The notes below the pieces were generated by a model. That model had not been told where the DNA came from. It saw nothing but the letters and a program-made list of their open reading frames with translations, and did no database searches. A program made the translations under genes and the position numbers. Below, piece after piece: positions 9,276-64,000 of a DNA stretch of 64,000 bases. The stretch's first letter is position 1, and each line of letters starts with the position of its first letter. This stretch comes from Sphaerodactylus townsendi (Eukaryota). The stretch covers positions 73,098,001 to 73,162,000 of the forward strand of contig NC_059425.1 in the NCBI RefSeq assembly GCF_021028975.2, written 5' to 3'.

Positions 9276-9282
9276 GGAAACA

Positions 9283-9527: not shown

Positions 9528-9544
9528 GAAACATAATAATCAGA

Positions 9545-36844: not shown

Positions 36845-37700
36845 GGGCCCGGCCGAGCTGGCTCCCTTCCTCTCCCGCGCAAGAGACTGACTCCGGCTTT
36901 CACGGTGATCCCATTACAGCGGTCACCTCCAGGTTGGACTATTGTAACTTCGCTTCTGGCGGGCCTACCTCTTGCGCTTTGATCCGGAGGAGTTACAGCT
37001 GGTCCAACATCGCGGCAGCCCGTCTACTCATACTATTAGGAAGCGCCTTTCGTGATCATATCCAACCTGTGCTGCGCCGCCTGCATTGGCTCCCAGTTGA
37101 GTTCCGGATCATCTTCTGCAAGGTATGGGTGCTGACGCTTTAAGGCGCTTTTATTGCGGTCTGGGGACTCCTTCTTCGTACGCTTCGAGGACCGCGATAC
37201 TCCCATATGTCCCTTCCAGGCCCCTCATGCGTTCGCAGGCAGAGGCCAATTTGCACTGCTAGTCCCCGGCCCCTCCTATGATGCGACTAGGCCTCCACCC
37301 GGGACCCAGGAGGGGCTTTTTCACCGGCCTCTGGCTCCCCTGCCTGGTGGAACACTCTCCCTCCAGCTGTCCGGGCCCTGTGGGATGTTGGGTGAGTTCC
37401 GCAGGGGTCCTGTAAAGGCCGAGGAGTTGTTCGCTTGCCGGGCTTTTGGAGTGCCCGGCCGCTGATGTGTGCCCCCCCCCCCCCTCCCGCCCCTCTACTC
37501 TAGTTCTTGTTTACAGGGTCCCTCCCACTCATCTATGGGGACTCCCTCCCCTCCTTTGTGGGAGGTTTTTAAAAGTGGATTTTGTTGCTGACGGCTGTTT
37601 TATATGTTTTTATAATGTTTTAAAAGCGGCTGTATCTATTTTAAATGGACTTGATTGTATGTTTTAAACTGTTGTTCACCGCCCAGAGCCCTTCCGGGGT
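36845..37700 (+). mobile_element. L2-type LINE 3' part, indel-rich, running into the gap
   Basis: VTSRLDYCN and DHIQPVLRRLHWLPVEFRIIF motifs. Confidence 0.85.
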
Positions 37701-37881
37701 NNNNNNNNNNNNNNNNNNNNNNNNNNNNNNNNNNNNNNNNNNNNNNNNNNNNNNNNNNNNNNNNNNNNNNNNNNNNNNNNNNNNNNNNNNNNNNNNNNNN
37801 NNNNNNNNNNNNNNNNNNNNNNNNNNNNNNNNNNNNNNNNNNNNNNNNNNNNNNNNNNNNNNNNNNNNNNNNNNNNNNNNN
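37701..37881. other. Assembly gap (181 N) in RNF8 intron 2
   Basis: Run of N. Confidence 0.99.
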
Positions 37882-38299
37882 AACTCCCCTTTGCCTTTGA
37901 ATTAACAAATCCAAAGGTATTTGTTTACAACCATATGCACTGTCAAAGGAAGACACTTGCTTTAGAATCTAATTCTTATGTTAAGTTGAGACATGTCATG
38001 CTGCCCTGCTCGCCAGCTAAGACACAGAAACATCAAAGGGTTTGGTTAGACGCAGTTCTCCAAAACAAGTCAACACTTATCATTTATATGAAAATCAGAA
38101 TGATTCCTCCAACAGCAATTCAAAATACTTTCCAAATCAGTATGAGAATACCACATGAACAGACAATAGACAGCTCTCTCTATGTAAGGGGCCTCACATA
38201 GTCAGTGGTGATGCTCACACTATTTAATTTGTTCACATAGATTTGGAATTGGGAGTGAGTAGTGTAATGGCCAAGTTTGCAGATAACCAAGGCTGACTG

Positions 38300-40080
38300 C
38301 CAAGCATTGCAGAAAGGCCTCTGCAAACTGAATGATGCAACAATGTGGCAAATGAAATTCAGTGCTCGTAAATGTTAGGTGAAGCACATTCACCTTACAC
38401 TTATCTGGACAGAAGGGACCTGGCCATAGCACTGCATGCCCTGGTAACCTCCCATACAGATTACTGCAACATGGGGCTTCTGTTGAACCTATGCCCATAT
38501 TAGCAGGGAGGCCCTCTTAGTGATTCCTTCTGCTGCCGAGGTGCAGCGGGAGGGGGCGCATGGGTGGGCTTTTTCTATGGCAGGCCCCAAGCTGTGGAAC
38601 AGCCTCCCTGCAGAAATTTGCCAGGCGCCGACACTTTATCGATTTTTGTGCCTTTTTACCCTCTTTACCCTCTTTTGCGCCTTTTTATCCTCTTTACCCA
38701 GGCCTTCAATGTGTGACCCCCAGGGTCCCACGTATCGATGCCAGCTGAATGGTAGGGGAAGGGAGGGGTGGGGATTTTAATGGATGTTTTTATTGACTGT
38801 TTTAAAGGACGTTTTAATGTTGGCTTTTAATGTTTTATGTTTTAACAGGGCTTTTAACCCCATTATGTAAGCAGCCCTGGGACTTTGGTGTAGGGCGGAG
38901 TATAAATGGAACAAATAAACAAATAATCCCAATGTTAAGTACATGCTAATGGGATCTGAACTTGCTGAGACCTAGAGGCAAAGAGACCTTGGAGTCATAA
39001 CAGATAACTCAATGGAAGTGCTGACCCTATATGCTGCAGCAGTGAAAAAGGCAAACTCAGTTTGGGGAAAGGGGCTGAAAATAAGACAGCCAACTATATA
39101 ATGCCCATGTACATAACTATGCTGAGGCTTCATATGGAATACTGTGCGCAGTTCTGTTTACCATAACTCAAAAAGGACATTTGTGAACTGGAAAAAGTAC
39201 AGTAGAGGACAATCAAGATGATTAAGAAGTGGGGGCATCTTTCCTATGAGGAAAGGCTGAAGAGCTTGGGATTTTTATGTTTAAAAATGAGAAAACTGAA
39301 GGGGGGGCATAATAGAGAATTATAAAATTATGTTTGAGAAAGAGACAGTGGTTGTTGGGTGAAATCAAACCTGAACTCTCCTTGGAAGCTAAAATGACCA
39401 AACCAAAGCTATCATTCTTTGGTTACATTACAAGAAGACAAGACTCACTGGAAAAGACAATAAGGCTAGGAAAGTTGAATATGGCAGAAAAAAAGGAAAA
39501 CTCTGCATGAGATGGATTGACTCCATAAAGGAACCCACAGCCCTCAGTCTGCAAGACTCAAGAAAGTCTATTAACAACAGGACATTTTGGAAGTCATTAA
39601 TACTTAGGGTTAACATAAGTCAGAAGCTAATTGACAGCACTTAAACCAAAGAGAAAGAAAGACACTGGGCAGAAAAAACATTGTTCCTCTCCCAAAAAAC
39701 TACAACTCGGGACAGTCCATTAATTTGATGGACACTAGATTCAGCACAGACAAAATACTTCCTTATTCAAGGAGTGGTTAAAATTTGAAATTCGCTGTCA
39801 GAGAATACAGTGATGGTCACAAGCATAGAAAAATTTTAAAAATAATTTGATAGATTCATGAGGATAAGTCTATCAGTGGCTTCTAGCAAAGATGACTAAA
39901 GGGAACGTTCCCATTTAGAAGCAGAAAACCTAAATATCAGCGCAAGGAGGCAACATCAGGAGAAAGATGTGGCCACTGTGCTCTTTGCTGGCTCTCCAGA
40001 GGAACTGGTTGGCTATTGTGTGAAACAGGATGCTGGATTAGATGGGGCACTGCTATGATCCAGTAGGGTCTTATGATTTT
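38300..40080 (+). mobile_element. Old CR1 carrying a nested L2 3' end (about 38403-38925) and a nested RTE/BovB 3' end (about 39345-39645)
   Basis: CR1 ORF2 C-terminal remnants resume after each insert; L2 tail ends in aaataaac; RTE fragment LEAKM.K.KLS.FG.I.RRQDSLEK. Confidence 0.72.
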
Positions 40081-40376
40081 ATGCCAATTTAATGAGGTGA
40101 ATAATGTTGGACTCAGAACAAGAAAGAGCTGACTTCTCATCCTAATTAAGCCCCAAACCCCATACCAACTAATCGTTTTCAATTAACCAATTCCACACAT
40201 TTAGTGTGTGGATAAAACAAGATAGCATCAACGTATGCAGCACTGACCTGCGTGAAGGAAAGACCAAATGCTCTTTTATCCTCAGAATTTCCACTTTCTG
40301 GAAACCCCACTCTTTCAAATTGGATTCCACATTCAGCATCTTTCAATTCATAACCAATTACAATGATTTTCTGTAC

Positions 40377-40505
40377 CTTGTTATCTGTCACTGTCCACTG
40401 GCCATCAGAATTCTGCCTGAACACACAATGGTTCCGCGAGATCATTAATGGGCAGGATCTTGACATCAACTGGTATGTGACACCAGCCCCTCGACCTATG
40501 GTCAC
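40377..40505 (-). CDS. RNF8: RNF8 exon 2, FHA core (VTIGRG...ISRNHC...WTVTDNK)
   Basis: FHA motifs GR and SRxH; canonical splice sites; 129 nt. Confidence 0.96.
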
Positions 40506-41728
40506 CTGAACATAAAAATAGACATTTCTAATAAATTCACTTCAGAATAATCTGCCACGGAAAAGATGCTCACTCTGAATTAATTACTTTTTTATCATAA
40601 TTCAAGAAAATACAGTAACACACCATACAAAAGTCCTCTAGGAACAAGACTTCATTTTAAGTGCAGTTTTTTAATCTGATAGTCAAAACATAGAAAACCC
40701 TTGACCACTTTGTAAATGAGATAAATTTACAAATAGCACAGTCTATTTGAGATTATGCTGAATAACAGACAACCTAGTTAGCCATTTGCATTGATGCAAG
40801 TAAAAATAGCAGAAAGTAAGTATAAGAGAATTGTCATTACACATTCTCCAGATTGCAAATTAATTTGACTGGAGACTTATCAGGTATTTTGACATTGATT
40901 CTCTTTTTCTATAACAAGACATTAATTTTTGTTTTCTATAACAATTATAACAATTCAATCTGCATCAGCATAGAATGTTAATACCTGAACTGTGATGCCC
41001 AAATATTTTCACTGCACTCCCTTCGGGTCTCATGACATGTTCCATTTTTTCCCCTTCCCCAAACGCCGCTGTTGACACAGCTTCCTAATGGCTCACAAAA
41101 TCTTGAATGAGGCCAGAATCCTCAAGGTCCTCTGCGGCTGTGTCGTCCCTCTGCAGGCTCAAGGATCCTCAGAAAATCTGCTTGGTCACTTCTCATAATA
41201 AGAATCAGCCTCACAACCTTGTAGCTTTTGAGATCACCATGCTTCATGTGTGTAGGAGAGTTCTAAGCAATAGTCACAGTTTCCAAGTCATAAACTTTCC
41301 CAGCTGCCCTGTGACTTCAATGTTCTTCACGCTGTTTGCACTAAAATTATACAAACTTTTGAAGAAACTTCTGACATTTTTAATGTGTCTTAAATGTTTT
41401 AATTTCAGAAGTATAACCAGACTTTATCAGGTCTATATTAATTGTGATTCATCAAGTCCACTGCAACTATTTATTGTGACATGTCACATACCTGATAATC
41501 TTCTTGCTTTTACCATCCTAAGCAAAGGGCAAAATAAAGTATATTGAGCTCAATAGTTTATGCCATTGCTGTATCCAAGCTGTCAGAACCCAAATAGAGT
41601 GTGTACTACGTAAGAAATGGGAAAACAATGATGTGCGTAGTACACTGGCTGGCCAACAATTATAATTCTTATTTTAGTTTTTAAATTTCTATAAGGACAT
41701 TTAAGTCATATTCATCTTACTACTCATA

Positions 41729-42185
41729 CAAAACTTAATAAACAGCTTATATATCAGCTTTCAAAACACAGGACTTGCAATAATACTTCAAATCATAGAA
41801 CACATGTATGCATATAAATCAGTCTTCCATGAGACTTGCAAGAGAGGTGCAAAACCAAAATCTTCCAAAATACAAGTCCTCCATGAGAGGACGGAGTCCC
41901 AGTGACATTGCTGACAGGCTCCGTGGTTGCTATCCAGATAAAAACTTAATAAACAGCTTATATATCAGCTTTCAAAACACAGGACTTGGAAAAATGCTTC
42001 AAACCATAAATTATGTTTGCATTTAAATCAGTCTTCTGTGGGACTAGCTGAATTCTTCCAAATCAGTCTTCTGTGGGACTAACTGAATTCTTCCAAATTA
42101 CAAGTCCATGCAAACCGGAGTTCCTGTGATGTCGCTGACAGGCTGCAGATGGGAAGCCTCTGTAGTTGCTTGAATCCAGAAAAAA
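41729..42185 (+). repeat. Local tandem duplication, unit about 210 bp
   Basis: aaaacttaataaacagcttatatatcagctttcaaaacacaggacttg at about 41730 and 41941, with downstream similarity. Confidence 0.8.
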
Positions 42186-42629
42186 GAACGCCTTTGCATA
42201 TAATAGTTTTCGAATGATATCTTCATCATAAACAAGTTTTCCAATTTTATAACATTGCCATATTGAAGTTATGGTCCTCTGTTCATTTTTTTTTACCTCC
42301 TTCAATGGCTAATACCAATCCTGTATCCAAGCTGTGCCTAGCAATCTCATGTAGAACACCTTCAAAGAAATCTACTGTTAACTAGAACCAGCACAGTGCT
42401 AGTTGAATGAGCCCAATCCTAATTCACATCTGCTTCGTTTTGTTTTGCACTGTGATACATATTTACAAGAAAAACACAATTAAGAGGAAGTCATTTCTAG
42501 CAATGCGTCAGACCACAGTTTACTTGGAAAAAATATAGTGAACAGCCCAAAATGTGCATAGCTACTAACTTTAGTTGGAAATGTTTCACACACCTTAGTA
42601 AGTTAAGACTGGTGAAACTCAAGACTCAA

Positions 42630-42852
42630 TGTGCTGTAGTGGTTAGTATCAGCCAAGGATCAGAGAGACACAGGGCCATAGCCCATTCCGCCATGCCATG
42701 CAAGTATAATGGTTAAGCTTGGACTGCTGACATGCTCTCAGCCTAATTTACCTCACAGGGTTATTGTGAGGATAAAATAGACAAGGGGAAAATGATCCTA
42801 GCTGCTTTAGGTCCCCATTGAGGAGAAAGAGAGAACACAAATGAAGTAAATA
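42630..42852 (+). mobile_element. Degraded tRNA-derived SINE
   Basis: tgtgctgtagtggttag head; ctctcagcctaatttacctcacagggttattgtgagg body. Confidence 0.65.
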
Positions 42853-43297
42853 CACTAACAGAGAAAATACTAACCTATTCTCCACATACTTTTACAGTTC
42901 AGTTCAGGGAAAGAACTGCATTGACAGCTGCGTGCAAATGTATGAGGCAGCGCAAAAGACAAAATGAGAATAGGAGAATTTAACATTATACCACTCTTCG
43001 GCGTTGGTTTCCAAAAAAATAAGTCAACATAATAAAACAAGAGCAATCCCCAAGGGAGCAAGAAAGATGCATTACGATTTAGAATAACAGCGGTAATGTA
43101 AAACAGCAGCAGAAGCTGTTAAGAGAAATCAGAAATTAAGACAAACAGCGCGACTCAAGGTACAGGAATCCTAGAGCTGGAGTTACAATTATGGCTCAAT
43201 GGCCGTAAAGCTAAAAAGCTCTGTAAAGAGGACAGCGGCGGCCATGGCCAATGTCCCAAACCCCCCAAGAGGAGGAGGGTTGCAAGTCGCCCTGCAC

Positions 43298-43311
43298 CCT
43301 CCAGGGGGCGC
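43298..43311 (+). promoter_or_regulatory. CTCF core motif CCTCCAGGGGGCGC in RNF8 intron 1
   Basis: Close match to the CTCF consensus. Confidence 0.6.
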
Positions 43312-43417
43312 TGCGTTTTCCCTCCGTGCACTCTGTCTCGCCGTCCCCTCATCCTTAGCCTACTCCTATTCCTCCCTCAAACCCCGGGGATGACAAGCAG
43401 TCCCAACACGCTCTCAC

Positions 43418-43540
43418 CTCACCGCCGGCCTCCAGCAGCAGCCACTCTCCGCTCATGCCCGCTCGCTTGAGGCACCAAACCTGGCCCGGGCCCCCTGAGG
43501 GAAGGGGCACTCTCTCGCCGCCGCCAAAACCTTCCGCCAT
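43418..43540 (-). CDS. RNF8: RNF8 exon 1 (MAEGFGGGERVPLPSGGPGQVWCLKRAGMSGEWLLLEAGGE)
   Basis: Kozak aagATGG; WCLxRxGMxxxWLLLE matches the start of the RNF8 FHA domain; GAG|gtgaga donor; 123 nt. Confidence 0.93.
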
Positions 43541-44184
43541 CTTCAACGACCTCCAGGCCGAAGCAATCGCTCATCTCGAGTGAGCGGTCCACAAGCACCG
43601 CCCAACTGAGGGCAGGAGGGAAAACTGGCACGCGCTCCAGCGCTTCAACCGCCCGTCACAATGATGGCGTCTCACAGCCCCGCAGGCGTGAACGTGATCA
43701 AGCGATGACCGGGTATGCGTTGAAAGGATGGTGCAGCATCTGGTATCTTGAGAGGGCAGGAAGCAGTCTATGGAATGGTGCTCATAGTTCTGGACTGGGA
43801 TACCTGGCTGATATCCCTCTCTGCCACGAAGCGCGCTGGGTGACACTGGACCTATCATTCTCTCTTCATCCAACCCACTTCCTGGGATTGCTGTGAATGA
43901 GGAACAGAGTCGCTCTGAGCTTCCTGGAGGAAGTCTGGGATAAAATGTTATAAATGGATGGGAATGTGAACTACCGTATGTGAACTACCACCAATCTTTT
44001 TTCTTATTATTATTTTCTTTGTTTTCATTCTGGTCTGGATTCTTCCCTTTTGCTCTGAACATAGACAGCAGCACTTTTGAGGGAGTGCATTAAGAGCAAT
44101 TGCTGATTTTATCATCTGTGAGCAGAGGTGGATTTTCCTAAATCCTTTTGCTCAGAGTCTGCCCAACTCTGCAATGCCCTAGAA

Positions 44185-44640
44185 CAGGGGTGTCAAACAT
44201 GCAGCCCAAGGGCCAAATCCAGCCCCTTGAGAGGGCTTATCAGGCAAATGAGCTTGTTGAGGGAATTTCCCACACAATCCCTATCTGGCCTGGCAAGCCT
44301 CCTGTGGGTTTACTAATCCAGGCAAACACCCACACCATCCCAATCTGGCCTGGTGAGCCTGCTGTGGCCTCACCAGCCCAGGTACCCACTCACCCTTCTC
44401 CCAATCTGGTCTGGTAAGCCTACCACCTGCAGCAGCCACCCCCAAAGGGCCGACCACTTCCCCCATTCCCAATCTGGCCTAGTGAGCCATCCCCCCCCCC
44501 CCCCCGCCAGTGCTACTCAGCTGAAGCAGCCACTCCTCTTCACCACCCAGTTCTAATACAGACTGGCGAGCCTGCAGGACCTAGCCTGAACAAGTATGTC
44601 AAATCCAGCCCTTGTAACAAATGAGTTTATCACCTCACCC
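44185..44640. mobile_element. hAT-like element with internal ccaatctggcctgg repeats
   Basis: Left TIR caggggtgtcaaac, degenerate right TIR gtttatcacc; flanks ccctagaa / ccctagag. Confidence 0.65.
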
Positions 44641-45330
44641 CTAGAGTGCTTGGAAATCAGCATATAAATGATGTGGACACCTTGATACTTTGATATTTGT
44701 CCTGGCTAGGATATCGCCAGCTCATAGGCATTGTTTGTTTCCTATCAGGGCACTAACCAAATAGAGCTATTCTGTCTGTATTATTTGAAAGCAAGAAAAT
44801 ATGAGTGGGTTTACGAATTTAGTTTGCAACTTATATATTGTGATTTATGTACCTGTGTGTCTGTTAGCTTTAATAAAACTACTCTGAAGTCTGTTTCATG
44901 TATTATGGGATGAAGGTCAGCTTAACAATTCTAGTACTAAAAATCCAACATTACCATAAAGATCAGAAGCAGCGTTACTGAACAAATTACTGCCATAGTA
45001 CACTGAAACTCCAATTTAATTCCCATATCATGCACTTTGAATAAAAGTACAAAAAATACATTTGGGAAAGTTTTGAACTGAAAAGGACTTGGATTTGTCT
45101 TTTCATAGTTATCTGTGTCTATTTATAGGCTTAATGATATATGTCCCAGTTTTCTATGTACATATATAGCCTCTCTGCATTCTACCATATGAATTATTCT
45201 TTATAACAGAAGGACCACTCAATATAACCCACCACCCATTTGGTACAATTCTAGAGTTACTGTGGTTAAAAGATCGGTGGATTCAAGAAAACATAATCTT
45301 TGCTGTCCACCAGGGGCAAAATTCCAGCTA

Positions 45331-45564
45331 CCCTGTTTCCTCGAAAATAAGACATCCCCTGAAAATAAGACATAGTAGAAGTTTTGCTGAAGTGCTAAAT
45401 ATAAGGCCTCCCCCGAAAGTAAGACATAGCAAAGTTTTTGTTTGGAAGCATGCCCGGCAAACAGAACACCTGGAAAAATAAGACATCCCCTGAAAATAAG
45501 ACATAGCGCATCTTTGGGGGCAAAAATTAATATAAGACACTGTCTTATTTTCGGGGAAACACGG
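45331..45564. mobile_element. Tc-mariner (Tigger/Tc2-like) MITE
   Basis: TIRs ccctgtttcctcgaaaataagac / gtcttattttcggggaaacacgg; TA flanks; internal aaaataagacat repeats. Confidence 0.85.
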
Positions 45565-46168
45565 TATGTAACTGTGTTGAGGAATTCAAGAAAAATCTTA
45601 TGCTAAGTGGTTTGCCATGTGTATAGGTTGGATATGACCTATTTCCAGCACTCTGGTGTATATTGGAATTATCAATTATAATGTTCTCACAAAAGTGTAC
45701 TCCAGTATTATAATGTTATTCCAAGCCTAACCAACACTATTTGCCAAGCAAGGCACATAGATACACTAGAAAATCTATCCAAATGATTTCAATTCAGTTC
45801 TGTATAGTTTGCAGAAGCCCAGGAGAATGGGAGCTTGCCTGACATTCTTGAGCAGGCCATTCCTCAAGGCAGCAACCCCAACAGTGAAAGCACATGTATG
45901 AACAGTTGTTGATTTTGCCTATTTGCCGGTTGCCACCTCAGAAGCCCCTGCTGAGATGAATGATGTTATCATGGTAGAACATAGGGAAATAGGTGGTCCT
46001 GCAAATAAGATGGGCCGAGGCCATGAAGCACTTTGCATGTGATAGCCAATAAATGAAGTCAATGGAGCATCTGCGGAATGGAAGTAATATGCATGCTGCA
46101 TCTAGTTTCTGCTAATAGCCAAGGCATTCTGGACTTGAGAAAGTTTCTAACTGATTTTGAGGAGAGAC

Positions 46169-47220
46169 TGTTATCGCCCAGGAAAATAAACAGAATATTT
46201 TCCTGAGTCAAGTTACCTGACTACACTGGCTCCATGCCCGGACGCGGAGACTTGTGTGGCTCAGAAGCCTCCATAAGGTTCACAGAGAATGTATATGTAT
46301 GATTGTGCCAATGTCATATGGTTTCCCTCTTGTTTATGCCCCTCTAGGATGTAATAAAAGCCCCTTTAGAGTTTAATTTATGATTTTCTTACTGCTTAGG
46401 ATTTTAGTTTGACTGGGTCCCCCAGTTAGTTTAAGGTTTTGTTATTGTTAATTTAGGAGAGTCTTGCCTATAAGCATATGTATTTATCCCTTAAGGTTTC
46501 CCTAATGTTTAAGTTTAGAAATGTTATTTTTGAAATTTGTGTCTGTCAGCAAAAGCAGTAGCCTGTAAAGGCTGATATTAAGGGACAAGAAAGTTGGCTC
46601 TGGAATGCAGTTTAGGCCAACACCCAGCCGACTCCTTAGCAAAGACAAAGACCCTCTTTGGACTTGCAAATCAAATCTGTTGCCAGCACCCAGAGGTCCC
46701 CAGCCGTTGGAAGACGTGCAGAGACCACCATTGGACAGTTTGAACTTTTCTTTGTTGCAGAGATGAGAAGTGAGTGCATCAGGGCATTACTGAAGGAAAC
46801 AGCCATCTGATAAAGAAGATAGCTGGGTGCAGTAGCGAGCCCACCTGGATTTCCTGAATGGACTGTTATCTGTTCTCCCTTCAGCACCATTGTGAGATCC
46901 AGCAAGAAGACGTTTGACAGCGGGATTTTGTAATTCCATTCAGAAGTTGTAACTGTATCTTGCTTTTGTATTGTTGTTTTCTTATTGGTGTTTGGTGAGG
47001 GACTTGCCCCCTCACCTCCCCTTTTACCTGCCCCTTTGAAGTTGGGGAATAAAAGTTCTTGCACTGGGTTGCAAGAGTGCGATTCTCCTGCCCGAGCTGT
47101 GACCATCACTTCAAAATAAAATCTTTTTGCTTTGAAGACCGTAGGCTTCCTGCGCCTCATTAAGTTGCTGAGCTGAAATCACTTATTGTTACCCGAGCAG
47201 CAGCGGTAACAGCGGTAACA
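46169..47220 (+). mobile_element. Probable solo LTR just upstream of AARS2
   Basis: tgttatcgc...gcggtaaca inverted termini; AATAAA at about 47048 and 47114; no clean TSD. Confidence 0.55.
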
Positions 47221-47459
47221 AGTAGTCTAGCCTTTATGTACTGTAGCACAGATCCAGGTGAGCCATATCAAGTTAGGAATCATCTTGCAGGCTAGGCTGA
47301 ATCGGTAGTAATCCTTTTTTTACTGCAGCATTAACTGGCTTTACCAGAAAAAAAAGCTGGATCCCGTTCAAAACGCATCCCTGTTACCTACTTCCGATTC
47401 CATTTAGACGCTTATTTTTGTCTTCTTTTTTACGCCTCATTTTATATTTACGTCTTGTT

Positions 47460-48090
47460 GGTTCAATTTTTAACCTGGCGGGGGAAGCGGGGCCTCAAAA
47501 GTTGGAAGTGGTCCGGGGAAACATTGTGTTTGAACGACAGGCATGGGAGGAGGATCACCTCTTGTACTGCATCTGTCACAGTCCCACCATCCTCTGCGGC
47601 CAGAGGGATCGCTTCTGCAGTCTCGAATCCGCGGTTCCCCAGTTCCGCCCACAGCTAAGATGGCAGCGGCGGCCAAGCGGTCCGCGAGGCATGTTCTCCG
47701 GTGCTGGCACGGTGGTGCGTGCCTTGCTCGCTCTGCTGCTTCCTTCTCCGCTGCGCGGGTGCGACAGACTTTCCTTCAGTTCTTCCAGGAGCGGTATGGG
47801 CATGAAGTGGTGCCCTCGGCCCCTGTGCGACCGCGGGGAGACCCCAGCCTGCACTTCGTCAACGCTGGCATGAACCAGGTACGACCCTGAGAAGGAGGTG
47901 GCCGGCCTGGGTTGAGAGGCACCCTTGGAAAGGTTCCTGCACAGATACTGATCGGTCCCTGACTTTTCCTGATTTATGGATTTCGATGCTGCACCGTTTC
48001 ACGTGCTGCCTCCTAAAGAGAGGTGCCCAGCCGCTGTTTGCAAACTCGCCGAAATCCAAATTCAAACAGGCAATCCTCCAGCCGGGGTGG
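47460..48090 (+). promoter_or_regulatory. AARS2: CpG island and promoter of AARS2
   Basis: CpG-rich region around exon 1; aagATGGcagcggc start context. Confidence 0.72.
47660..47878 (+). CDS. AARS2: AARS2 exon 1: Arg/Ala-rich mitochondrial presequence plus AlaRS motif 1 (VRQTFLQFF...[23 protein letters not shown])
   Basis: AlaRS signature NAGMNQ; N-terminal transit-peptide-like extension distinguishes it from cytosolic AARS1; CAG|gtacga donor; 219 nt. Confidence 0.95.
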
Positions 48091-48389
48091 GGAGGATGTA
48101 TTAAGACAAAATTATTTTTTAAAAAAATAGGACGCCCAATGCATTTAAATTTAAAATCTGAACAGGGGCAGTTTTTAAAGAACTTTCCCGGGTCCTTTCT
48201 CGAGCGAGCGTCTATCAAAACCGTGAATTCCACTCCTAAGATGGAAGATTTTAAAATAAAATACACGAGAGCCCATTTGATTTTTATTTTGCTGTAATAA
48301 GCCATCAGCAGCAACTTGAGATTTACCTTTTCTTGTGTAGAAAGGACCATTCAGATTGTGGAGCATCACATGTCCTGTGTGTGCCGTTG

Positions 48390-48832
48390 CCTGAGTGCTG
48401 AGGGGGGTGGGGGTGTCTGCTGGGCGTCTCTTGCCTTCCCCCTCTAAAGTGAGGAGGGGAGAGGCTGCACAGAGGGACTTCTTTGCGATAGCCCATTGTG
48501 GAATGCCCCTCCCATTAGAGGTCCAACAGGCACCAACACTATACACCTTTCAGTGCCTGGTTAAGACCATCATTTTTGCCTGGGCATTTGACTGATTGAT
48601 ACCATCTACCTCAAACCACTGGACTTATTTGGAACTTGCCCTCTACCTGCACCTGGGGAGAGGGGGGTTAGAGAGCGGGTGGTTAATTGCTTTTAGGTAT
48701 GATTTTAGGAATTTTTATCTGGTTATGATGGTGTTTTTTGGTGATGCGAAATCACTTTTAGATTGTTGTAACCTGCCCTAGGGTGTATTTGAAGGGAAGG
48801 ATAGAAATCAAATAAATAAACAAACAAATAAG
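48390..48832 (+). mobile_element. L2 3' tail
   Basis: Similar to the other L2 tails; ends in aaataaataaacaaacaaataa. Confidence 0.65.
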
Positions 48833-48852
48833 AATGCCAAAAACATTGGAAA

Positions 48853-49055
48853 TGCCCTGACTTAGATGTCCAAGGATAGCCAAAACTTGCCAGAGGTCAA
48901 AAGGTAAGCAGGGTCAGCCCTTGTTTATATTTGTGATGGGAGTGCAGGGTTGCTTTGGAGAGGCAGACAAGGGCAAACCAGTTCTGTTCATCTCTTGCCT
49001 TGAAAACCCTATGAGGTTGCCATAAGTCGATTTCAGCTTGATGACCCTTTCACGC
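48853..49055 (+). mobile_element. Degraded 5S-derived SINE
   Basis: taagcagggtcagccct..gtt..atttg..atggga head; same tail as the 36388 copy. Confidence 0.55.
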
Positions 49056-49239
49056 TAAATGCTTGGGAATTTCAAAACTGTATGGAATCCTTTGAGAAAG
49101 TCTCCATACAATACTTTGACAAATTAGTAGGTAGAGTATAACTTTAGATGCTGGGTTGTAAAATGGTTTGTTTTAAGTTTAGCAATCATTAAGAATTTGA
49201 TTGAGGCAAGCTTCTTCATTATGAATGTTAATGTTCAGA

Positions 49240-49253
49240 GCGCCATCTAGTGA
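49240..49253 (-). promoter_or_regulatory. CTCF-like motif TCACTAGATGGCGC in AARS2 intron 1
   Basis: One mismatch to the CCACTAGATGGCGC consensus variant. Confidence 0.45.
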
Positions 49254-49456
49254 ATCAAGACCCTTTTCTCTTTAATTAACCAAAGCAAAACAAAGTAAGC
49301 TACAGTTTCTATCTACAGATTGAGTCTCACACAATACTCACGGCTTACTCCCTGTTCAGATCAGGACTATTACAATAATAGTTTTATATGCTGGGCAGTA
49401 CTACAGTCCTCATCAGACCTCTGTGGAATGTGAAATTTGTTGGGTGTTCCTTTTAA

Positions 49457-49684
<228 letters not shown>

Positions 49685-51056
49685 TGACGCTGGGTCAGTC
49701 TGTTTGTGCCACTGTAGAGACAATCTTACATTTCATACCTTGGGGTTTCTTTTTGATAACTTTTGTTGTAAACCACTGACCCATTAAAGTCAGCTCAAAC
49801 ATTCAAAAATGGAATCTGATCGAGCCCTTCTTACACAGGACCACTTCAGATTAAGACAGGCAACTGCATGTTTGAATACTCCTTCATGTCAAGAACTATC
49901 TGCATGTGGGAAACTAGCATGTGGAAGTGAATAATTTTAGCTGAGTCACTTCTCCATGGTGGGTTAGCCATCTCCCTACAGGGAACTTTGTATGTGCAGC
50001 CAAATAGTTCCCTGTCTGAAATAGTCCAGACCCAGTAGGGCAGTGTCATGGACTACTTCCATGTGTTTGAATTGGTCTTTAGAAAGCTATCTTGGGGGCT
50101 GGAGGAGAGGTGGGGGAGAGAATGAGCATCCATTTTCTGTAACAAGGTTTAAAATGTAGAGTGCTGCTTGTAGAGTGTGTTCATAGGTATCATCTCAAGA
50201 ACTGGCACTGACTGTTAGATCTGAGGAATGAATGTCCGTAACTGTGGTTGCCACACCAGTAAAAATAAGATTTGCTTGCTTTTTCTGAGAGCAGGTATAA
50301 TGTCACTGTTATAATCCTTGTTGTGAGAACAGTAAGTCAGGGGGACCTTGAAGTTCAGGACATGTACTAATGAGATTCTAGTTTTGTTTGCACTGTTTTG
50401 TGGAAATTTGGGTTTATGAGGCTTTCATCTTGCTTAACTGAGATATTTGTGAATGAGAGAATCATTTAGATTCTCCCTCTGTTGTCAATAGCCGCATGAA
50501 TGGCCCAGGCTCATGACAGTTTGAGAGTTAAGCAGGTTGGCCTCTGTCAGGGTGGGAGGCCTCCAAGAAAGTCTGGGGCTGCTGCGTGGAGGAAGGCAAT
50601 GGCAAAACCACTTCTACTCATCTCTTGCCTGGAATGCTCAGTGGATGGGGTTGCCATGAGTCCTTTGCAATTTGATGACACTTCCTTTCTCTTCTTCCTC
50701 TTCCTCTGTTGTTTATGGTGTCCTTTATCTGGGCGGGAGAGGGGGTTACCTTCAAAGAGTATGTGGTGTTATTTATCTGGAGTTCTTCCTTCAAAGAGTA
50801 CAAGTGGTTTTATCCCCATAGTAACTCTGTGAGGCAGTTTAGGTTGAAAAACCTAGGTTACCCAGGAAGTAGGGTGACTGAGTAAAAGCATAAATCAAGC
50901 CTCTCCATTCCTACAATATCGCCCACATTGTCCTTCAATTCTGAGATAAAACAAAGGTTATCCAATGCATCCCCTCCCATCCCCTGTAATGAAGCAATTT
51001 CTTTCCTATTACATTGGCTTACTTTTTCCCATTGCTGTTTTCCATTTCCTGTTCAG

Positions 51057-51202
51057 GAGGAAGCATGCAGCATGGCATGGGAGCTCCTCACACAGGTCTA
51101 TGAGATCCCAAAGGACCGTCTCTATGTTACTTATTTTGGAGGCGATACAAAACTTGGGCTAACTGCAGATGAAGAATGCAGGGAAATATGGCTAAGTTTG
51201 GG
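51057..51202 (+). CDS. AARS2: AARS2 exon 3 ([30 protein letters not shown]...CREIWLSLG); last AARS2 exon detectable in the window
   Basis: gttcag acceptor, GG|gtaagt donor; 146 nt, ends in phase 2. Confidence 0.96.
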
Positions 51203-51779
51203 GTAAGTAAACAAGAAAAGCAGGCAAAAAACAGAGAGAGAACTGAGCTTTTTGCATTTATGTTCCACATTGCATGTATTCTGTCGTGAAGTTTACTGTC
51301 CGGAATACCATCTTTCACTTAAGAGAAAGTTTCCAATTTTTACAGAAGAAGAGCTTAAAAATGTGCAAATATTGTTGGTTTGATAAAATGTTGGAGAAGA
51401 GAATGATGTAAGTTGCACTGAAAAGAGAGGTGGGGTATAAATGAAGTTAGTTAAAGAACTGAAGACTTGCATTGCAGTCCTAAGCAGTTGCCCCCCCCCC
51501 CCCTTAAGTTCATTTAAAGAAGAGGGTATAATTCTGGATAGGATTGTATTGTTGGAAAGTATAGACCTTACTTGCTGTTTCCAATCAACAGCCACCAGGT
51601 ATCTGTACACTGCATAGTTCCCTGTTCCCTCCCTGTTCCCCTTCTCTCTAACCCATTGTGAAGGTATTCTGATACATACAAAGAACTTAAATACTGTGTT
51701 CGTTTATGTAAAGTGAGTGTGTTTGGACTGTTAGCCTTACCCTGACAGTGAATGGATTTTCTTCATTATTTGTATAGTG

Positions 51780-51927
51780 CAGGGGTAGGGAACCTGTGGC
51801 TCTCCAGATGTTCAGGAACTACAATTCCCATCAGCCCCTACCAGCATGGCCAATTGGCCATGCTGACAGAGGCTGATGGGAATTGTAGTTCCTGAACATC
51901 TGGAGAGCCGCAGGTTCCCTACCCCTG
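51780..51927. mobile_element. hAT MITE family 2 copy with non-matching flanks
   Basis: One mismatch versus 5413-5560; left flank GTATAGTG, right flank CCTTAGAC. Confidence 0.92.
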
Positions 51928-52220
51928 CCTTAGACAATAATGTCTAAGTTTTAAAGTTATTCCCTTGTCAAATAGATGCTCTGGTTTTGATCAGAGCTAA
52001 TGGCTCATTGGGCCCTGCTGTAAACATGTTTAAATAAAAGGGTTAACAATACAAAGCCTGTTATCAGGAAGATGGGTGTTAGAATCCACACTCAACCCCT
52101 CCTGAGTAACTTAGAGACATCTTGTCACCCTGTGCATTTCCTCCATGGTATAATAATGCCAATGTTGCTTTGATCAGCACTTGAAAGATGGAATAAACAA
52201 GGTTTAATATGGGGTTGAGC

Positions 52221-52343
52221 CAGGGGCGGAACGAGGGGGAACTGCGCCCGGGGTGTGCGCCTTGCACCCCTGCTGCAGCACCGCCCACCCCGCCCCGAAA
52301 CGCCCCCGGGATGCCCCGGAACACCCCCGCCCGAGGCGTCGCT
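52221..52343. mobile_element. Truncated GC-rich hAT-like fragment
   Basis: caggggcggaacgaggggg terminus; CpG-rich in an AT-rich context. Confidence 0.5.
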
Positions 52344-53575
52344 TAACAGATCAGGACCATATGATATAAGGAGTTATATTGTTCTTATACATTAAGTTCT
52401 TGTTTATTACATAGTCTATTAATGACTAGAGATTGGAGGAAAGCAACTGGGCTGAAATGTGTTTGGGTTTTTGCAAGGTACTCGCTTGTACATTGGTTGT
52501 TTGCTTGTACATATTGTTATGTATATATTTTTGTTCATTATTGTGGAGAATGTATTTGTGATTTATTGATATCTGTATTATTGTATGATATGCTTATTTA
52601 ATAATAGCTTTAATGTGAGACATATTAGTGAAGTAACTCAGATATGCTCAATTAAATTGCATTTTTGTAGATTTTTTGGGGTGTGTGGAGTTTGCTCTCA
52701 GCAGATTTACTTAATTTGTTAAATTTGAGTTGCCTCCCTATTTCTTTGCAGTTGGATCCCAAATTGATTTCAGAAACCAGTACTTGTCCCCTGCCCCCAT
52801 CATCTACAGATTGCTATTGCTGAGCATGCATAGATCCCTTTTCCTCTGTGTGAGTCACAGCCAGTCTTCTAGCATCTGAGATTAAAGGACAGGAATCCCA
52901 GTTCAAAAGCAGGCATGAACTGGTGTTCTTAATACATAGGGAATCCTCCCAAGATTTCACTTACTTGAAGGTAAGGCCTAATTAACATAGTAGACTTTCC
53001 TGTAAACATATATAGGATTACATTGCGCAGATTCTACTTGGCCATTCACAAGTACTACTAAGGACTTTTCAGATGTAGATTCAGATGTGTTTTAGTGTAT
53101 AAGTTAGCATTAACTTGTGTGGGATAAAGTACAATTTCCAGTTCCGTGTACAGATATGGTAGATTTGCTGAAGGAAAGAATAAGTCCTTTCTTAAAAGTG
53201 GTGTAAGAATATCCTTGCACTATGGTGTAAGAATATCCTTGCACTAGATATGGGAAATACCTTTTTTTTTAAAGGGAGGCAAATCTAACCAAATTATGGG
53301 TTATCTATCTCATTTGTCCTGCTGTTCATTCAAAAATCTGTGCATATGGGGTTATCAGTACTGAGGATGTTGTGGAGGAGATATGGTACATAATCATACA
53401 GCCTACCTTAAACATATGGGCTGGAAGTTATATTAGATTGTCAGTTACATTTAAACTAGGCCTTATACTTTTGGAACTTTCAGATCCCTCCCAGTGGCTT
53501 GTTGTTCTAAATCACCACCTGTCACAAGTTCTGCTGACTCTTGGGAGCTTTTGTTTGCTGCCTGTCTCCTGCTAG

Positions 53576-53802
53576 GACAGTCTTTTACTTGGAATACAAA
53601 CTGGCAAAGCTGCTGATATGTCCACTAGATGAAAACTACCCAGAGAGCCGCTATGAACTTGGGGGCTACAGTCGCCAATCTGACAGTGCTGCAGTCTCCA
53701 GTATTCCCAGTCATCCATCAACAGCTAGGCAGCCCACTGGGGTCCCAAGTCATGTGCGGCTGAGACTTCCTAGTCAAACTCAGAGCAGCCCAGCTTGCCT
53801 AG
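53576..53802 (+). CDS. RGS22-like gene, exon A (xTVFYLEYKLAKLLICPLDENYPESRYELGG...SSPACL)
   Basis: ctcctgctag acceptor, G|gtaaat donor; phase 2 to 1; YLEYKLAKL resembles YFEYRLAKL of the RGS22 N-terminal region. Confidence 0.8.
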
Positions 53803-55745
53803 GTAAATTTCTTGCAACCACTCTGTCACTCTGTGCTTACCTATTCACCTTTATAATGAGGCTATCAGCATGTCTCTTTCCATTTCCCCTTCTGAGAAAT
53901 GGCCTACAAATCTCATTGTGTGATGCTAGGGTTGCTGTTTGGTTGAATGTAAAGCCACCTTTCTTTCTTCAACTTTCTTGGACCTGATTATGTCATGAAC
54001 TTCAGCCACTTGCATTTTTGTTGTAATATGTACTTGCTTGCAGTCTTTCATGTCATTTAATGAATTTAGCAAAGCCTTGAGTCTATGTAAGTTAATGTCA
54101 CAATACATGTATTAATATCTGTGTGGTGGTGTTTTATGAAGTCTGGGTGTAAGGGTGGCCCTCAACGAACTGGGAAATAATATAGGTAGTATTTTACAGT
54201 ATAAGAGGCCTGTTAATTCTGTTGCATATGGCATGGTAAATATAACTCTTGGGGCTGAAAGTTTCACGCATCCATAAACTACTAAGAATAATTTTGTTCC
54301 ATCACACCAAATGGCCAACTAGTCCAGCAGTCTGTTTTTCAGCTGTGATCAAAACCATACAACAATAAGCAAATGGTGGTACCTAGACAATCCCAAAACA
54401 CTTTTGAGTGAATAAATATTCAAGTATTTAATGTAAAGTGCTTAAAGCATATGTGAAAAATTTATAAGTGAGTAGGCACATGAATAGTAAATCAGTCCAT
54501 GCAAAACAAGAGCTGACCTGTTTTATTGCTCATTTTGAGGGTTAGTAACCACTGCTTCAGTTCATTCAGTCTGTTTGCTTATGGGACATGGTACACCTTT
54601 CATGCAAATTCTATATAAATTTATCATTATACATGAATGCTATAATTCATAAGCATATATTACAATCCATAAAATATGCTTAGCAGTATCAAATACATAC
54701 TTCAATATATTTGCAAAGATAATTGCTGTATAAATCCAGATACTTACATCACATTATACAAATTTAAACACTAATTCTTTGATCTGTTCTAAAGGTGTAC
54801 GTCAACAATGTGATGCTAGAAATAAAAGCTGTGCATCTTAGTTTGCACTCCAGTTTCCTGTATAATTGGGATTTTAATATTTTACAGCTGGAAGTAACTT
54901 GTATTGAAGGCTTTATATACGAACTACTTCTAATTTCCTCTTATACAGATTCATTTTCTCACTTACAACTCCCAAGAGTGAGCCTGACCTAAAACAGTGC
55001 ACAGCCTCAAAGAGCACCTGCAGTAACATGCATGTCAGATGCTACAGAAAATAGGAATAATCGATTAACATATTTAATTCTAAGGGTGTGTGTGTCTTGA
55101 GTCTGTCGATCCAATGTGCCTCCATCTGCAGCAGGCACCTTTTGCCATCCATTTTATTATAAGTGTAAGGTGTAAATTTTGTTTTGTTGCATGGTTCTGG
55201 ACTTTGGTGGAGTGCTGTTTGTTTTGGTTATTCAGCTGTGATCAGACAGATCGTTGCAGGATCTTTAGAAGAGGCTATGAAGGCAACACATTTCCCATGA
55301 TGTTTCTGTCCCCTGAATTCACTGTGAAACTGTCAACATGGAATTTTTGTTTACCTACTGTAACTCATCATTCTATCCTAAATGAATTAGTTTTTTTAAA
55401 AAATCATTAACACACACACACACCCCAATCTAAGTGAAATTCCTAAGGAATGTTCATAATTTTTTAGGGAAGGAAAGAGGGAAGGTGATTTTCTTTAACT
55501 ACATGAAATTGACATAGTAAAATAATCTCTGATGACTGAACCAAGTGGAAAGTGATATTGGGAACAATCTGGAAGCTGCTTTGGAAGGGTTAGGAACACA
55601 GCTGGGATGTTGCCTTGTGACCCTGCTGGGCCTTTGTGTCCTGTTCACACTCAAGGGGGAAACTCAAGGCTCATTCTCCAGACACTTATGCATAGGTGAC
55701 TTTATTTCTGATCTCTCTGACCTTCCGCTTGTTGTCTTTTTGCAG

Positions 55746-59396: not shown

Positions 59397-60642
59397 AAAC
59401 TTTGCAGATCTTGGCTTTGTGCGGCTTCCAATCTTTTTCTAGCTCCCAGTTCCTATCTTTAAGATATTGTGTGGTAACTATCAAAATCACCATGTTGTTG
59501 GGAAGGGGGGGGAAATGATTGTTTAAAGAAGTGCCAGTAGAGGGTCACTGTCTTGCTAGACTAGGTATTCCTTTTTAGGAGGTATAGCTACTTCTTAGAG
59601 GAAGCCAGAAGGGGTCAGTTACCAAGGTGTTAACAGGATGACACAGTTTAGCAAGAACAATGACAAATTGCTTATATCTAAGCCCTCATTTGCTGAGCGA
59701 GTTCCCTTGCAACCCCACCTAGAGATGTAAAATGTCCAGACATTTTGAAGCCACAGGGAAAAAAAGATTTTTATTTTTTTTCCTGGAAAAAAATGGCACG
59801 CTTGGGAAAATATACACCATACATACTGTCCTGTCAAACCTAAACTAATTTTACTGCTTTAACAACATAAAAAGCACAATTTACAACTTACTCAGTATAT
59901 AAAGTTGCAATATTTGACAATGTATGGAAATTAAACATTCTAAATGCCTTCATTTGTTACAAGCAACATTACAAATACATGTACCTTATTTTTTGATGTC
60001 TGAAAGATAAATAAGAATTAAATAGAAAACAAAAGCTTTGTGGTAAATAACACAAAATATATTATCAACCTACTGTGACTAAGCCACAATGTCAAACTCC
60101 AGCATTGGGCTGGTTGTCTCCTCATTCAGGCTTCCATTAGTTTGCCTTAAGGGAAGAACCTTGGAAAAGAGCGAGGAGGGGAAGTTTTACTGCACCTTCT
60201 TCTGTTCTTGCCAGTAACCTCTTCCTGGTTGACTTACATGAAATCTGGCCCTTCCTCCCCCTGGTTCTCCCAGGGAATGCCTTTTGAAGAAGGGTTTGTG
60301 TGTGGTACAACTTCAGGCTCAGCCACTCACTTTATCCTGGGGGATGGGCCTGTGGGAGTGACAGGTCTTGAGCCCAATGGGCAGCTGACTGCCTGGGATC
60401 CCATTTCCCCAGCTCTTCCTCTCTAGGAGGTCTTACAACACTTCTACTATGAACTAAGGGAGGTTGCTTCAGCCAGTTCCCTGTCCTTCCAAAGAAGCCT
60501 GCCTATGTTTATAACTAATTCTTTTCCTCCTGTCTTAAGTGAGAGCAATGAAGTGAGTAAAGGAGAGTAGGTAATACTCCTGTCCTCTTCCAAGTACCTA
60601 CACCTGTGCAATACTGTTCTTTCCCTTCCTCTTGTTTTGCAG

Positions 60643-60803
60643 AAAGCTGGTATGAATTGTTTCAGGGAGTTCCTCCATGGCACATTAGGGATCTATCTCT
60701 TAGACTTCTGGATTGATTGTGAGGACTTCATGGAGCACACCAGGCACTTGGAGGCCACAGCTACACCACAAGAGACCTGGCTATTCTCTTTTAATGCTCT
60801 CCG
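60643..60803 (+). CDS. RGS22-like gene, exon E, RGS-domain helices (KAGMNCFREFLHGTLGIYLLDFWIDCEDF...FNALR)
   Basis: RGS signature GxxxFxxFL...LxFWxxCExF; resembles RGS22 FKKFIKGTLG..W; long pyrimidine tract acceptor, CG|gtaacc donor; absent from the ORF track. Confidence 0.88.
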
Positions 60804-62094
60804 GTAACCATGCAAATGAATTTATTGAGCTAAGTATAGGATCCAGTGGGTCACTTAGTTTGCATTGCCCATTTCTCAGTCACTCCGGAATGATGAAGTA
60901 CCTGTCAAATCACTGTGTTACAGACTGCTAATTGCCTTTTGCCAGTATGCTGTGTTTATAAAAACAACACCGTACATCAGGAAAAGCAGCATAAAATATG
61001 TGAATTAGTTCGTTTGTTTGCATAATTTCTTCTATTGCTTCTAATCTAGAGGAGGGGCATAAAGCTGATGAAACCATTAGAAGCCAGCTGTTTGACTGCC
61101 AAAAATGGATCTCTTTACTGTCCCATTGCTGTCCCATTTGCTGTCAAGCCATTATGTCCATCGTCACTTTCTTAATAGCCTCAAAACTGTTCTTTGAATG
61201 AATGCTGACTTTCTCAGGATGATGAATTTTCTGGCCAGTTTCTGCAGAATTGTGCTTTGAAATAATTTATCCTCTGAGAAGACGCTTACACAGAAGTCAT
61301 TAGGGCAGTGATGATTAAATGTATTCTCTCAGCATGTCTGAAGTTTATAGAACATTTGACCAGATGAGCATGTTTTGGTCACACTCTTTCCCACAAGGCA
61401 AAAGGGGCCCATAAGGAGACTTTGCTATACACTTGCACAGCCCAAAGTACTATGTCAATTCTGTTGTACAATTTGAATCTCCTTTTTTTTCTTGAAAAAG
61501 CTCTCCTGAACTTCAAGTGTAGCACCAAACTGAGAATCATCACAATGTTTATCTGTGCTATGAAATGTAAGGAACACACAGATCCAGGGATTTATGCTTG
61601 TGATGCACCTCGGGTCTAGACTACCCTGATGTAACCACAAAACTGCCTATTGTTAAGTTTAGCCCAACATGAACACAAATATTTTGGCTGCAGTTTTTCA
61701 TAACCAGTGTGGGAATGTAAGAGCAGTAGCTGCAGAGGGAGAGACCAAGCATGTTCTATTTTTCCCTGTTATTTTGTAGCATGGCAGACTTTTCATAATA
61801 CCATTGTACTCTTCCCTATCTACAATTATTTTTGCCTGGTTTTGGAGTAGAATAAAATTGCATATCTTCGCAATTTCTTTCCCCTAATTTAGACATTTTC
61901 TAAAAGAGGGCCAGATATGATACAAGTTTGGAGCAAAGGTTGGTTGGAGGGCTTCAGTTTCTGCTACTGAGTGAGCTCTGTTGTAGAGTGAGCATGATCG
62001 GTAGCCTTTAGCTGCAAAATCTGACAAGCTTGAGATTAGACCTTTGGCTGTTCCAGTTCATTTTGGAGTTGAGGATACTGTTTTTCATTGGCAG

Positions 62095-62660: not shown

Positions 62661-63411
62661 AATAAAATATACAATATATAATCTGAAGAAAGAAAAATAA
62701 CACTGATACCTTGAAAAATTTATGGGGAGAGGTAATTTTGGACTGGGTTTTTATTAAGTTCAAATGAGGAAAGAACTGTGGAAAATAAAATGTATTGTTT
62801 AGATTCCTCATTGTCAAATAATTATTTAAATAAATATTGATTTTATATAGATTTTGTATTGATGGCCTCAAGCAGAAATATAAACATTTCCATTTACAGT
62901 TGGAGGCAAAATAGTCAAGACAGGCTAAATCTATGGACTGAAAGTGTGTAAAGGCTTCAGTTAGGTTTGTAATGTGAAGAGCTATATTGGCAAGAGCCTT
63001 CACTTACTGTTGTGCCACTATCTGTGCTTTTTCTCCTGTGTGTACAAGAATCAGACACTGCAGTGGGTCACAGGTGATTTAAGCCTTACTTGTATGTGTC
63101 AATGCTATGAAGTCCCATTTATATGGATCCCCCAAAGGCCTGGTTCCTGCTGCTTTCTGTTTGAAGGCTTCCCACTACGTGGCTCCTCAATGTTCAGCAT
63201 GCCCATGAGCAACACTGAATACGCCCCCCCCCCCCCCCACCTCCAGTGGCATGCTCTGTGCCGAAAATAATTCAGGACTAGATAGGTGGAAGACTATCTG
63301 GACTTGTTCAGTGTGAAAGCAACCAGGGAAGGGATGGCAGTTGGTACTTGTAAAGCCAGTCAAAGTTTCTGTTTCTATAATGTTGCAGCCTTGCTGTTCC
63401 TCTGCTTGCAG

Positions 63412-63551
63412 GAGCCATTTGGTGAACCTGCAGGCACTCAGGAGACAGCTTTTGTTGCCCTGAGCAGGAAACAATATGATGCTTTGAGACGCTTGCGCTC
63501 TTACTGGGTCCCTCGGTTTCTCATCCACCATCAGAGGACACAGCATCTCAG
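63412..63551 (+). CDS. RGS22-like gene, exon G (EPFGEPAGTQETAFVALSRKQYDALRRLRSYWVPRFLIHHQRTQHL); gene continues beyond the right end
   Basis: cttgcag acceptor, AG|gtttgt donor; YWVPRFL resembles RGS22 YWAPRF and the end of an RGS domain. Confidence 0.87.
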
Positions 63552-64000
63552 GTTTGTGTTGTGAGGGATCATGAGGTTGGGCATACCACAAGGAACTAAC
63601 TTCCTCTAAGGGTGTGTACCAGCAGTTGGAGGGGCCTTTAACTGGAGGACAAATGGACCTCTAGCAATTTGAGCAGGTAACCAGGAGCTGGGATTACAGC
63701 TGGCTTTCTTTGGTTCTGGTGAGAGGTGAATTCTGCAGTCATGCCATTCAGAAAAACCAACTTAGGGACAGGTCATTGCAAAGGTGTAACCAAGTTGGTC
63801 TGTTATAGCAGATTAAGACAAAAGTCCAGTAGCACCTTACAAAGCTAACATTTACTACATGAAAGCTCAGGTTGACCTCATTTGCTGGATGGTTGCAACA
63901 GAGCAGGTTAAAACTGAATCCATCAAAGACGGAGATCCTTTGGCTGGGCCGCAGGGGGGAGGTGGGGGATTTCCAACCGCCAGAGTGGGAGGGGGCTTTA

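Follow-up and report, generated by a model that had tools for sequence, protein, structure and literature searches.

Swapped flanks of a palindromic hAT-type MITE at one junction of an apparent inversion between AARS2 and an RGS22-like gene

Comparison of a 64-kb stretch of genomic DNA (referred to below as the window) with other squamate loci showed that a short palindromic MITE, copy B in Table 1, lies at one end of a segment that is inverted with respect to the gene order ancestral to squamates. The alignments place the breakpoint at the edge of this MITE, between positions 51779 and 51780. The inverted block would therefore consist of the tail of an RGS-like gene together with AARS2 exons 22 to 4, with its two ends in AARS2 intron 3 and in an intron of the RGS-like gene, respectively; judged from the corresponding distances in Heteronotia and Podarcis, it would measure ∼50 kb (about 47–53 kb). 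As to the origin of the flip, we infer, as the weakest step of the present interpretation and with a chance that we put at about even, that it was made by the assembler between two identical palindromic MITEs.

Table 1. Coordinates of the genes, repeats and MITE flanks discussed in the text (positions of the window).
Feature	Position	Strand	Basis or remark
Copy A of the MITE (5413–5560) including its GTGTAGAA duplications	5405–5568		Within a CMTR1 intron
CMTR1	Below 13.4 kb (start near 13.4 kb)	−	Beyond RNF8
RNF8	27150–43540	−	FHA and RING motifs in its open reading frames; AARS2 adjoins it head to head
AARS2 exon 1, coding part	47660–47878	+	
AARS2 exon 2, limits approximate	49463–49654	+	tblastn; Pfam tRNA-synt_2c, 110.7 bits
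AARS2 exon 3, phase 2 end, last AARS2 exon in the window	51057–51202	+	Splice sites; Pfam tRNA-synt_2c, 32.9 bits
AARS2 intron 3, proximal part, single copy	51203–51779	+	Relatives stay colinear with it until the MITE begins
Left 8-mer GTATAGTG, native AARS2 intron 3 target site	51772–51779	+	Heteronotia intron 3 homology runs through it
Copy B of the MITE, hAT-type, palindromic, 148 bp, junction element	51780–51927		17-nt terminal inverted repeats; near-identical copy A
Right 8-mer CCTTAGAC	51928–51935	+	Read as reverse complement of GTCTAAGG, the putative duplication around another MITE copy within an intron of the RGS22-like gene
Older dispersed repeat(s) abutting the MITE; MIR-like SINE core from ∼52064	51928–52220	+	Depth 500–17000
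G+C-rich repeat piece opening with the hAT-like end CAGGGGCGGAAC	52221–52345	+	High depth
RGS22-like exon, first in the window	53576–53990, 3′ limit approximate	+	Acceptor at 53574–5; opens with the third codon base
RGS22-like exon with RGS-box signature	60637–60804	+	Pfam RGS, 22.3 bits, just below the cut-off of 23.9
RGS22-like exon, orthologue of the Podarcis minus-strand exon downstream of AARS2	63377–63574	+	blastn

Analysis of the coding content of the window revealed two incomplete genes, one on each side of the MITE. When full-length AARS2 proteins were compared with the window, only residues ∼38–189 were matched, and the remaining ∼800 residues, from residue 190 onward, were not encoded in any frame of the 64 kb. 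A profile made of hagfish AARS2 and the three window exons, entered as separate rows and never joined, recovered squamate AARS2 proteins, among which those of the geckos Euleptes and Heteronotia were nearest to the AARS2 exons of the window. No full-length AARS2 protein of the same species was returned by this search, which was weighted toward the window's own exons, and word searches with two fish AARS2 queries (pipefish, P0020; Astyanax, P0023) returned fish only. The RGS22-like gene of the window lacks its 5′ exons, and the window ends inside it. The phases of AARS2 exon 3 and of the exon opening at 53576 fit each other, so that the two would be read in frame. A single run of N was found in the 64 kb (37701–37881) and none at the MITE junction. 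An exact look-up of five open reading frames of the window, two of them crossing junctions, gave no record in the contig collection; one of the five starts with TTG, for which a gene caller might write M where the translation used here has another residue. At the other end of the window, the position of CMTR1 after RNF8, both on the minus strand, is also found in human, whereas the head-to-head pair RNF8–AARS2, common to Heteronotia and Podarcis, is one that we take to be absent from the human map.

Copy B and its sister copy A are distinguished by one base in 148 bp, position 51797, where a CpG has undergone a C to T transition. Four matches to the 17-nt terminus CAGGGGTAGGGAACCTG were found in the window, at both ends of the two copies (chance expectation 0.23), and within the 64 kb ends of this type belong to copies A and B only. 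The terminal inverted repeats of copy B are perfect over their 17 nt, and the arms of its hairpin are 92% self-complementary. Summed contig depth across the MITE reached 0.8–6.6 million in four sequencing runs, with contigs in the thousands. Length, terminal inverted repeats, the 8-bp target-site duplication of copy A and copy number all fit a short non-coding MITE of the hAT superfamily. The family is evidently active, as the two copies are one nucleotide apart and the insertion of copy B is missing in two close relatives, organisms B and D, whose contigs are described below. The duplication of copy A is perfect, GTGTAGAA being present on each side, whereas copy B has GTATAGTG as its left and CCTTAGAC as its right 8-mer, which are identical at three of eight positions. 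As the copies have diverged by a single base in 148 bp, mutation of an originally perfect duplication cannot account for mismatches at five of eight positions. The preliminary description of this DNA, which had reported a very young MITE one base away from the copy at 5413–5560, a perfect duplication around that copy, unequal flanks around copy B and a location between the last AARS2 exon and the first RGS22-like exon, was thus borne out in each of these respects.

In order to define the ancestral arrangement, the window was compared with the corresponding loci of Heteronotia binoei (L001) and Podarcis lilfordi (L002), which span the deepest squamate split among those sampled. Both loci showed the gene order RNF8(−), AARS2(+), RGS-like(−), the last gene giving a faint RGS hit and lying tail to tail with AARS2. 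As this order is common to the two sides of the deepest sampled split, it represents the ancestral squamate arrangement. Positions 40002–51779 of the window are colinear with L001 5086–16607 by tblastx, and blastn aligned 50922–51723 with L001 15730–16527 at 77.6% identity. In a MAFFT alignment inspected by eye, homology to Heteronotia passes through the left 8-mer, the window reading TTTGTATAGTG where Heteronotia reads TTTGTACAATT. The MITE site is empty in Heteronotia, whose own intron sequence continues, with exon 4 following ∼400 nt beyond. No significant match was obtained on either strand between the right flank of the MITE and this continuation of Heteronotia intron 3 (L001 16608 onward), in a comparison in which the left flank, used as control, scored far above all shuffles. 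A right flank representing the direct or the inverted continuation of the ancestral intron is therefore unsupported by the comparison of both strands with L001.

On the far side of the MITE, the RGS22-like exon at 63377–63574 aligned with L002 51768–51571 in reversed orientation (blastn, 79.3% over 198 nt, E 1e-43), and the matching Podarcis exon is a minus-strand exon of the RGS gene, ∼9 kb from the 3′ end of that gene. As the orthologous exon lies on the AARS2 strand in the window and on the opposite strand in Podarcis, the rearrangement is read as an inversion and not as a deletion. A deletion starting from the MITE end, caused by transposase or by recombination of direct copies, with loss of AARS2 exons 4–22 and of the head of a gene on the same strand, would explain the lost duplication as well as one gene without a tail and another without a head. 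It is nevertheless very improbable, because the RGS-like gene lies opposite to the AARS2 strand in both Heteronotia and Podarcis and the copy in the window is its flipped orthologue, a change of strand that deletion cannot bring about.

The region around the junction was further compared, over positions 50400–54399 of the window, with short-read contigs, the form in which all nine runs found were available. Organism A shared 0.95–0.96 of the sampled words with the window and was without differences over 3.6 kb of single-copy sequence. Organism C, covered at shallow depth, was likewise identical to the window, whereas organism B was ∼0.5–1% and organism D ∼3% diverged from it. A contig of organism A spanned 50400–51802 with 0 differences, thus taking in the left flank and the first 23 nt of the MITE with the T at 51797, and the insertion and its left junction are therefore real in organism A. 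A contig of organism B (3146 nt) matched 51491–51779 and then continued with 2855 letters that fitted neither the MITE nor 51928–54399, and a contig of organism D matched the same 289 nt (51491–51779) and then carried 58 letters that likewise fitted neither. Unique right-hand sequence was found in organisms A, B and D from positions 52156, 52262 and 52232 onward, respectively, and in B and D it extended to 54399. Among the records listed, none bridged the MITE: the contigs break inside it and only the left half-junction was confirmed.

Since homology of organisms B and D and of Heteronotia ends at 51779 in each case, the breakpoint lies exactly at the MITE. An ordinary MITE insertion whose right target-site duplication was lost locally, with the true breakpoint elsewhere in 51.9–53.6 kb, might be argued from the repeat-rich segment 51928–52345, which could not be followed in the contigs of the relatives. 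Against such a coincidence, which we regard as highly improbable, colinearity with three relatives stops at the first base of the MITE, and L001 16608 onward, where the ancestral intron goes on, gave no match to the right of it on either strand. The proposal in the preliminary description that the flanks come from two separate insertion sites fits these results. In keeping with that proposal, the relatives (contigs of B and D; Heteronotia) are not colinear across both flanks, and the switch in synteny lies at 51779/51780 and not elsewhere in 51.2–53.6 kb. Among the mechanisms that it had offered, adjacent deletion fails on the change of strand, whereas ectopic recombination and assembler error stand, the latter as a flip in orientation rather than as a jump to an unrelated locus. 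What had been missed is the type of rearrangement: in the ancestral squamate state AARS2 and the RGS22-like gene are neighbours lying tail to tail, and from this state the window differs by an inversion.

Contig depth to the left and right of the MITE was 20.8 and 22.4 in organism B and 38.2 and 36 in organism D, respectively, thus agreeing within 7%. In organism A (run X1) depth was 34.2 on the left and 26.4 on the right, an unexplained ratio of 1.3 that possibly reflects a copy-number or heterozygosity effect. The near-single-copy depth on either side of the MITE indicates that there is no spare AARS2. The same values bear on a more complex event, in which a partial RGS-like duplicate or a MITE-bounded macrotransposon was inserted into AARS2 intron 3, leaving exons 4–22 beyond the window, or in which the assembler jumped to another locus. 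Such an event would agree with the window ending within the RGS22-like gene, and the left 8-mer, which has no partner within the window, might in that case have arisen as the target-site duplication of a composite element. It is improbable, as right-hand unique sequence was present at single-copy depth in all runs, leaving no room for a duplicate, and as a simple inversion of neighbours explains all features at once. A composite longer element with its own duplication was also sought directly, and no GTATAGTG-like 8-mer was found behind a hAT-type end downstream in the window.

The proposed inversion would have started from near-identical palindromic MITE copies at both sites, one with the duplication GTATAGTG and the other presumably with GTCTAAGG. 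Copy B would then combine the left flank of the first copy with a flank of the second in reverse complement, a combination that is the signature of exchanged duplications. The partner junction is predicted to read CACTATAC–MITE–GTCTAAGG and to lie ∼50 kb downstream, beyond the window, and AARS2 exons 22 to 4 would have been sent onto the minus strand, likewise beyond the window. One inversion of adjacent neighbours would account for every feature described here.

When the 16 nt to the left of the MITE were compared with the reverse-complemented 16 nt to the right, both anchored at the MITE ends, 12 positions matched with one gap (CATTATTTGTATAGTG against CATTATT-GTCTAAGG; 51763–51779 and 51928–51942), a value with P ∼5e-4 relative to random window positions. 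The part of this match contributed by five of eight duplication positions fits a GTnTA target preference, and the CATTATT part is without explanation. No significant inverted symmetry of the flanks was obtained by free local alignment of 200 nt per side.

The MITE is in effect its own reverse complement and is present in very many identical copies. A block between two such copies therefore joins seamlessly either way where no single read or pair bridges all 148 bp. As the four half-junctions exist in either orientation, k-mer or half-junction searches cannot decide between them. AARS2 is essential and indispensable, and it is known to be the only mitochondrial alanyl-tRNA synthetase of vertebrates. 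At single-copy depth and with only AARS2 exons 1–3 contiguous, the assembled state is biologically untenable, the essentiality of the gene being taken from established knowledge. A flip made by the assembler is favoured over a real, probably heterozygous, inversion because the assembled orientation splits this single-copy essential gene. Against an assembler flip, the join contains no N and the window is nearly gap-free, and an error at a 148-bp repeat would be very unlikely with accurate long-read contigs, in which case the inversion would be real and heterozygous. Moreover, nothing speaks directly against the assembled orientation in the records listed.

A real inversion of ∼50 kb in this lineage, by non-allelic recombination between MITE copies or by hAT alternative transposition, is a serious possibility, though we rate it at less than an even chance. 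It draws on the same structural evidence as the assembler flip, and the seamless junction without N, the evident activity of the MITE family with an insertion missing in organisms B and D, the compatible phases of exon 3 and the exon at 53576, and the depth ratio in organism A, which indicates that the locus is incompletely understood, would all agree with it. An inversion of this kind would destroy AARS2, and the sequenced animal would consequently need to carry it in the heterozygous state or under some other shelter, such as that of a clonal or hybrid lineage; it would create an in-frame fusion of AARS2 exons 1–3 with the RGS22-like gene. Weighing against it are the breakage of a single-copy essential gene, the shortness of 148 bp as a substrate for homologous recombination, and read evidence in which the half-junctions are alike in both orientations and nothing favours the inverted one. 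As a more specific version, with much the same chance, the flip may have been produced by two copies of an active MITE, inserted after the split from the nearest sampled relatives, that recombined or served the transposase jointly, yielding a heterozygous fusion of the mitochondrial-targeting head of AARS2 with the body of the RGS22-like protein.

A block between inverted repeats can be assembled either way round if the repeat is longer than the reads that cover it, the flip-flop of the plastid inverted repeat being the textbook case. The present junction resembles such cases in its seamless join with swapped flanks. The repeats concerned are usually kilobases long, whereas here, with 148 bp, an error needs reads or overlaps shorter than ∼250 bp. 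If the flip is an artefact, segments of tens of kilobases can be turned round in this assembly with no visible seam between identical palindromic MITEs, the apparent AARS2–RGS22-like chimeric gene should not be treated as biology until spanning reads are checked, and mismatched MITE duplications would serve as a cheap flag for such flips. If it is real, a very young hAT MITE family is reshaping a vertebrate chromosome with both the ancestral state and the signature of the mechanism preserved. An in-frame fusion gene would then have been produced and an essential gene knocked out on the same haplotype, giving a freshly caught case of MITE-driven inversion and gene fusion in a vertebrate in which both parental sites can be identified.

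Exchanged duplications are an accepted signature of transposon-mediated inversion, as Delprat et al. (2009, PMC2775673) described for the Galileo-mediated inversions 2j, 2q7 and 2z3 in Drosophila buzzatii. As in those inversions, a foldback-like cut-and-paste transposon is found at the breakpoint with exchanged target-site duplications; non-inverted chromosomes there carry one copy of each target (PMC2775673), and here the proximal site of the non-inverted relatives is one unoccupied target. The systems differ in that Galileo belongs to the P superfamily, generates 7-bp duplications and is kilobases long, as opposed to the 148-bp hAT-type MITE of the window. Furthermore, both breakpoints and chimeric copies were sequenced for Galileo, whereas one junction is seen here and the copies resemble each other too closely for chimerism to be visible. 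The Galileo inversions are also viable polymorphisms, whereas the present one would kill an essential gene (PMC2775673). Among hAT elements, inversions are produced by alternative transposition in maize (PMC8225341). The reversed-ends inversions of Ac/fAc at p1/p2 of maize likewise involve hAT termini of two elements, breakpoints at element ends and 8-bp target sites, and such events also lead to gene fusions or altered expression. Reversed-ends events place one of the breakpoints at a new target site and leave the rearranged segment between 8-bp duplications (PMC8225341), whereas here one junction is seen. For vertebrates, inversions mediated by L1/Alu recombination are reported to distinguish human and chimpanzee (PMC2603318), and they resemble the present case as inversions through inverted copies of a dispersed repeat. 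The elements concerned are retrotransposons in true inverted orientation, whereas any two copies of a palindromic MITE are direct and inverted repeats of each other at the same time.

The sequence to the right of copy B was examined for its repeat content. Copies of the repeat that starts at 51928 were 10–14% diverged in all runs, with the match starting at 51927 and unmatched letters to the left of it. No tRNA head was found for the SINE-like repeat at 51928–52220, and neither flank of the MITE has another copy in the window. Positions 51929–51948 form a 20-nt near-perfect palindrome (CTTAGACAAT and AATGTCTAAG as its two halves, 9 of 10 pairs) inside this older dispersed repeat. In organisms A, B and D, bases 51989–52050 appeared to be missing; contigs drop rare repeat variants, and hence this absence carries no evidential weight. 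Within the adjoining G+C-rich piece, 52221–52272 is bounded by CAGGGG...CCCCTG. Joints of 51927 to 52221 and of 51857 to 52221, that is from the end and from the centre of the MITE, were present in contigs of three organisms, which suggests that elsewhere in the genome the G+C-rich piece sits inside or beside MITE halves. To the left of the junction, in a run of ∼13 C at 51490–51502, the contig of organism A was one C shorter than the window, and the contigs of organisms B and D break there.

A different hAT-type left end, CAGGGGTGTCAAAC, occurs at 44185 between the RNF8 and AARS2 promoters and is preceded by CCCTAGAA at 44177 (44177–44210). This 8-mer had been cited as a further example of the target pattern of hAT insertions, yet it occurs once in the window and thus represents a flank and not a demonstrated duplication.

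The core of the MITE gave 70–84% matches in AARS2 introns of Podarcis lilfordi (for example L002 25723–25779, 16958–17012 and 26672–26765), which indicates that the hairpin core is old and widespread in squamates, whereas the exact copies of the window are very young. Below the Rfam threshold, the hairpin at 51804–51902 also matched several families of microRNA precursors, with mir-5408 scoring highest at 51.8 bits relative to a gathering score of 90, suggesting that some annotated lizard microRNAs derive from such MITEs.
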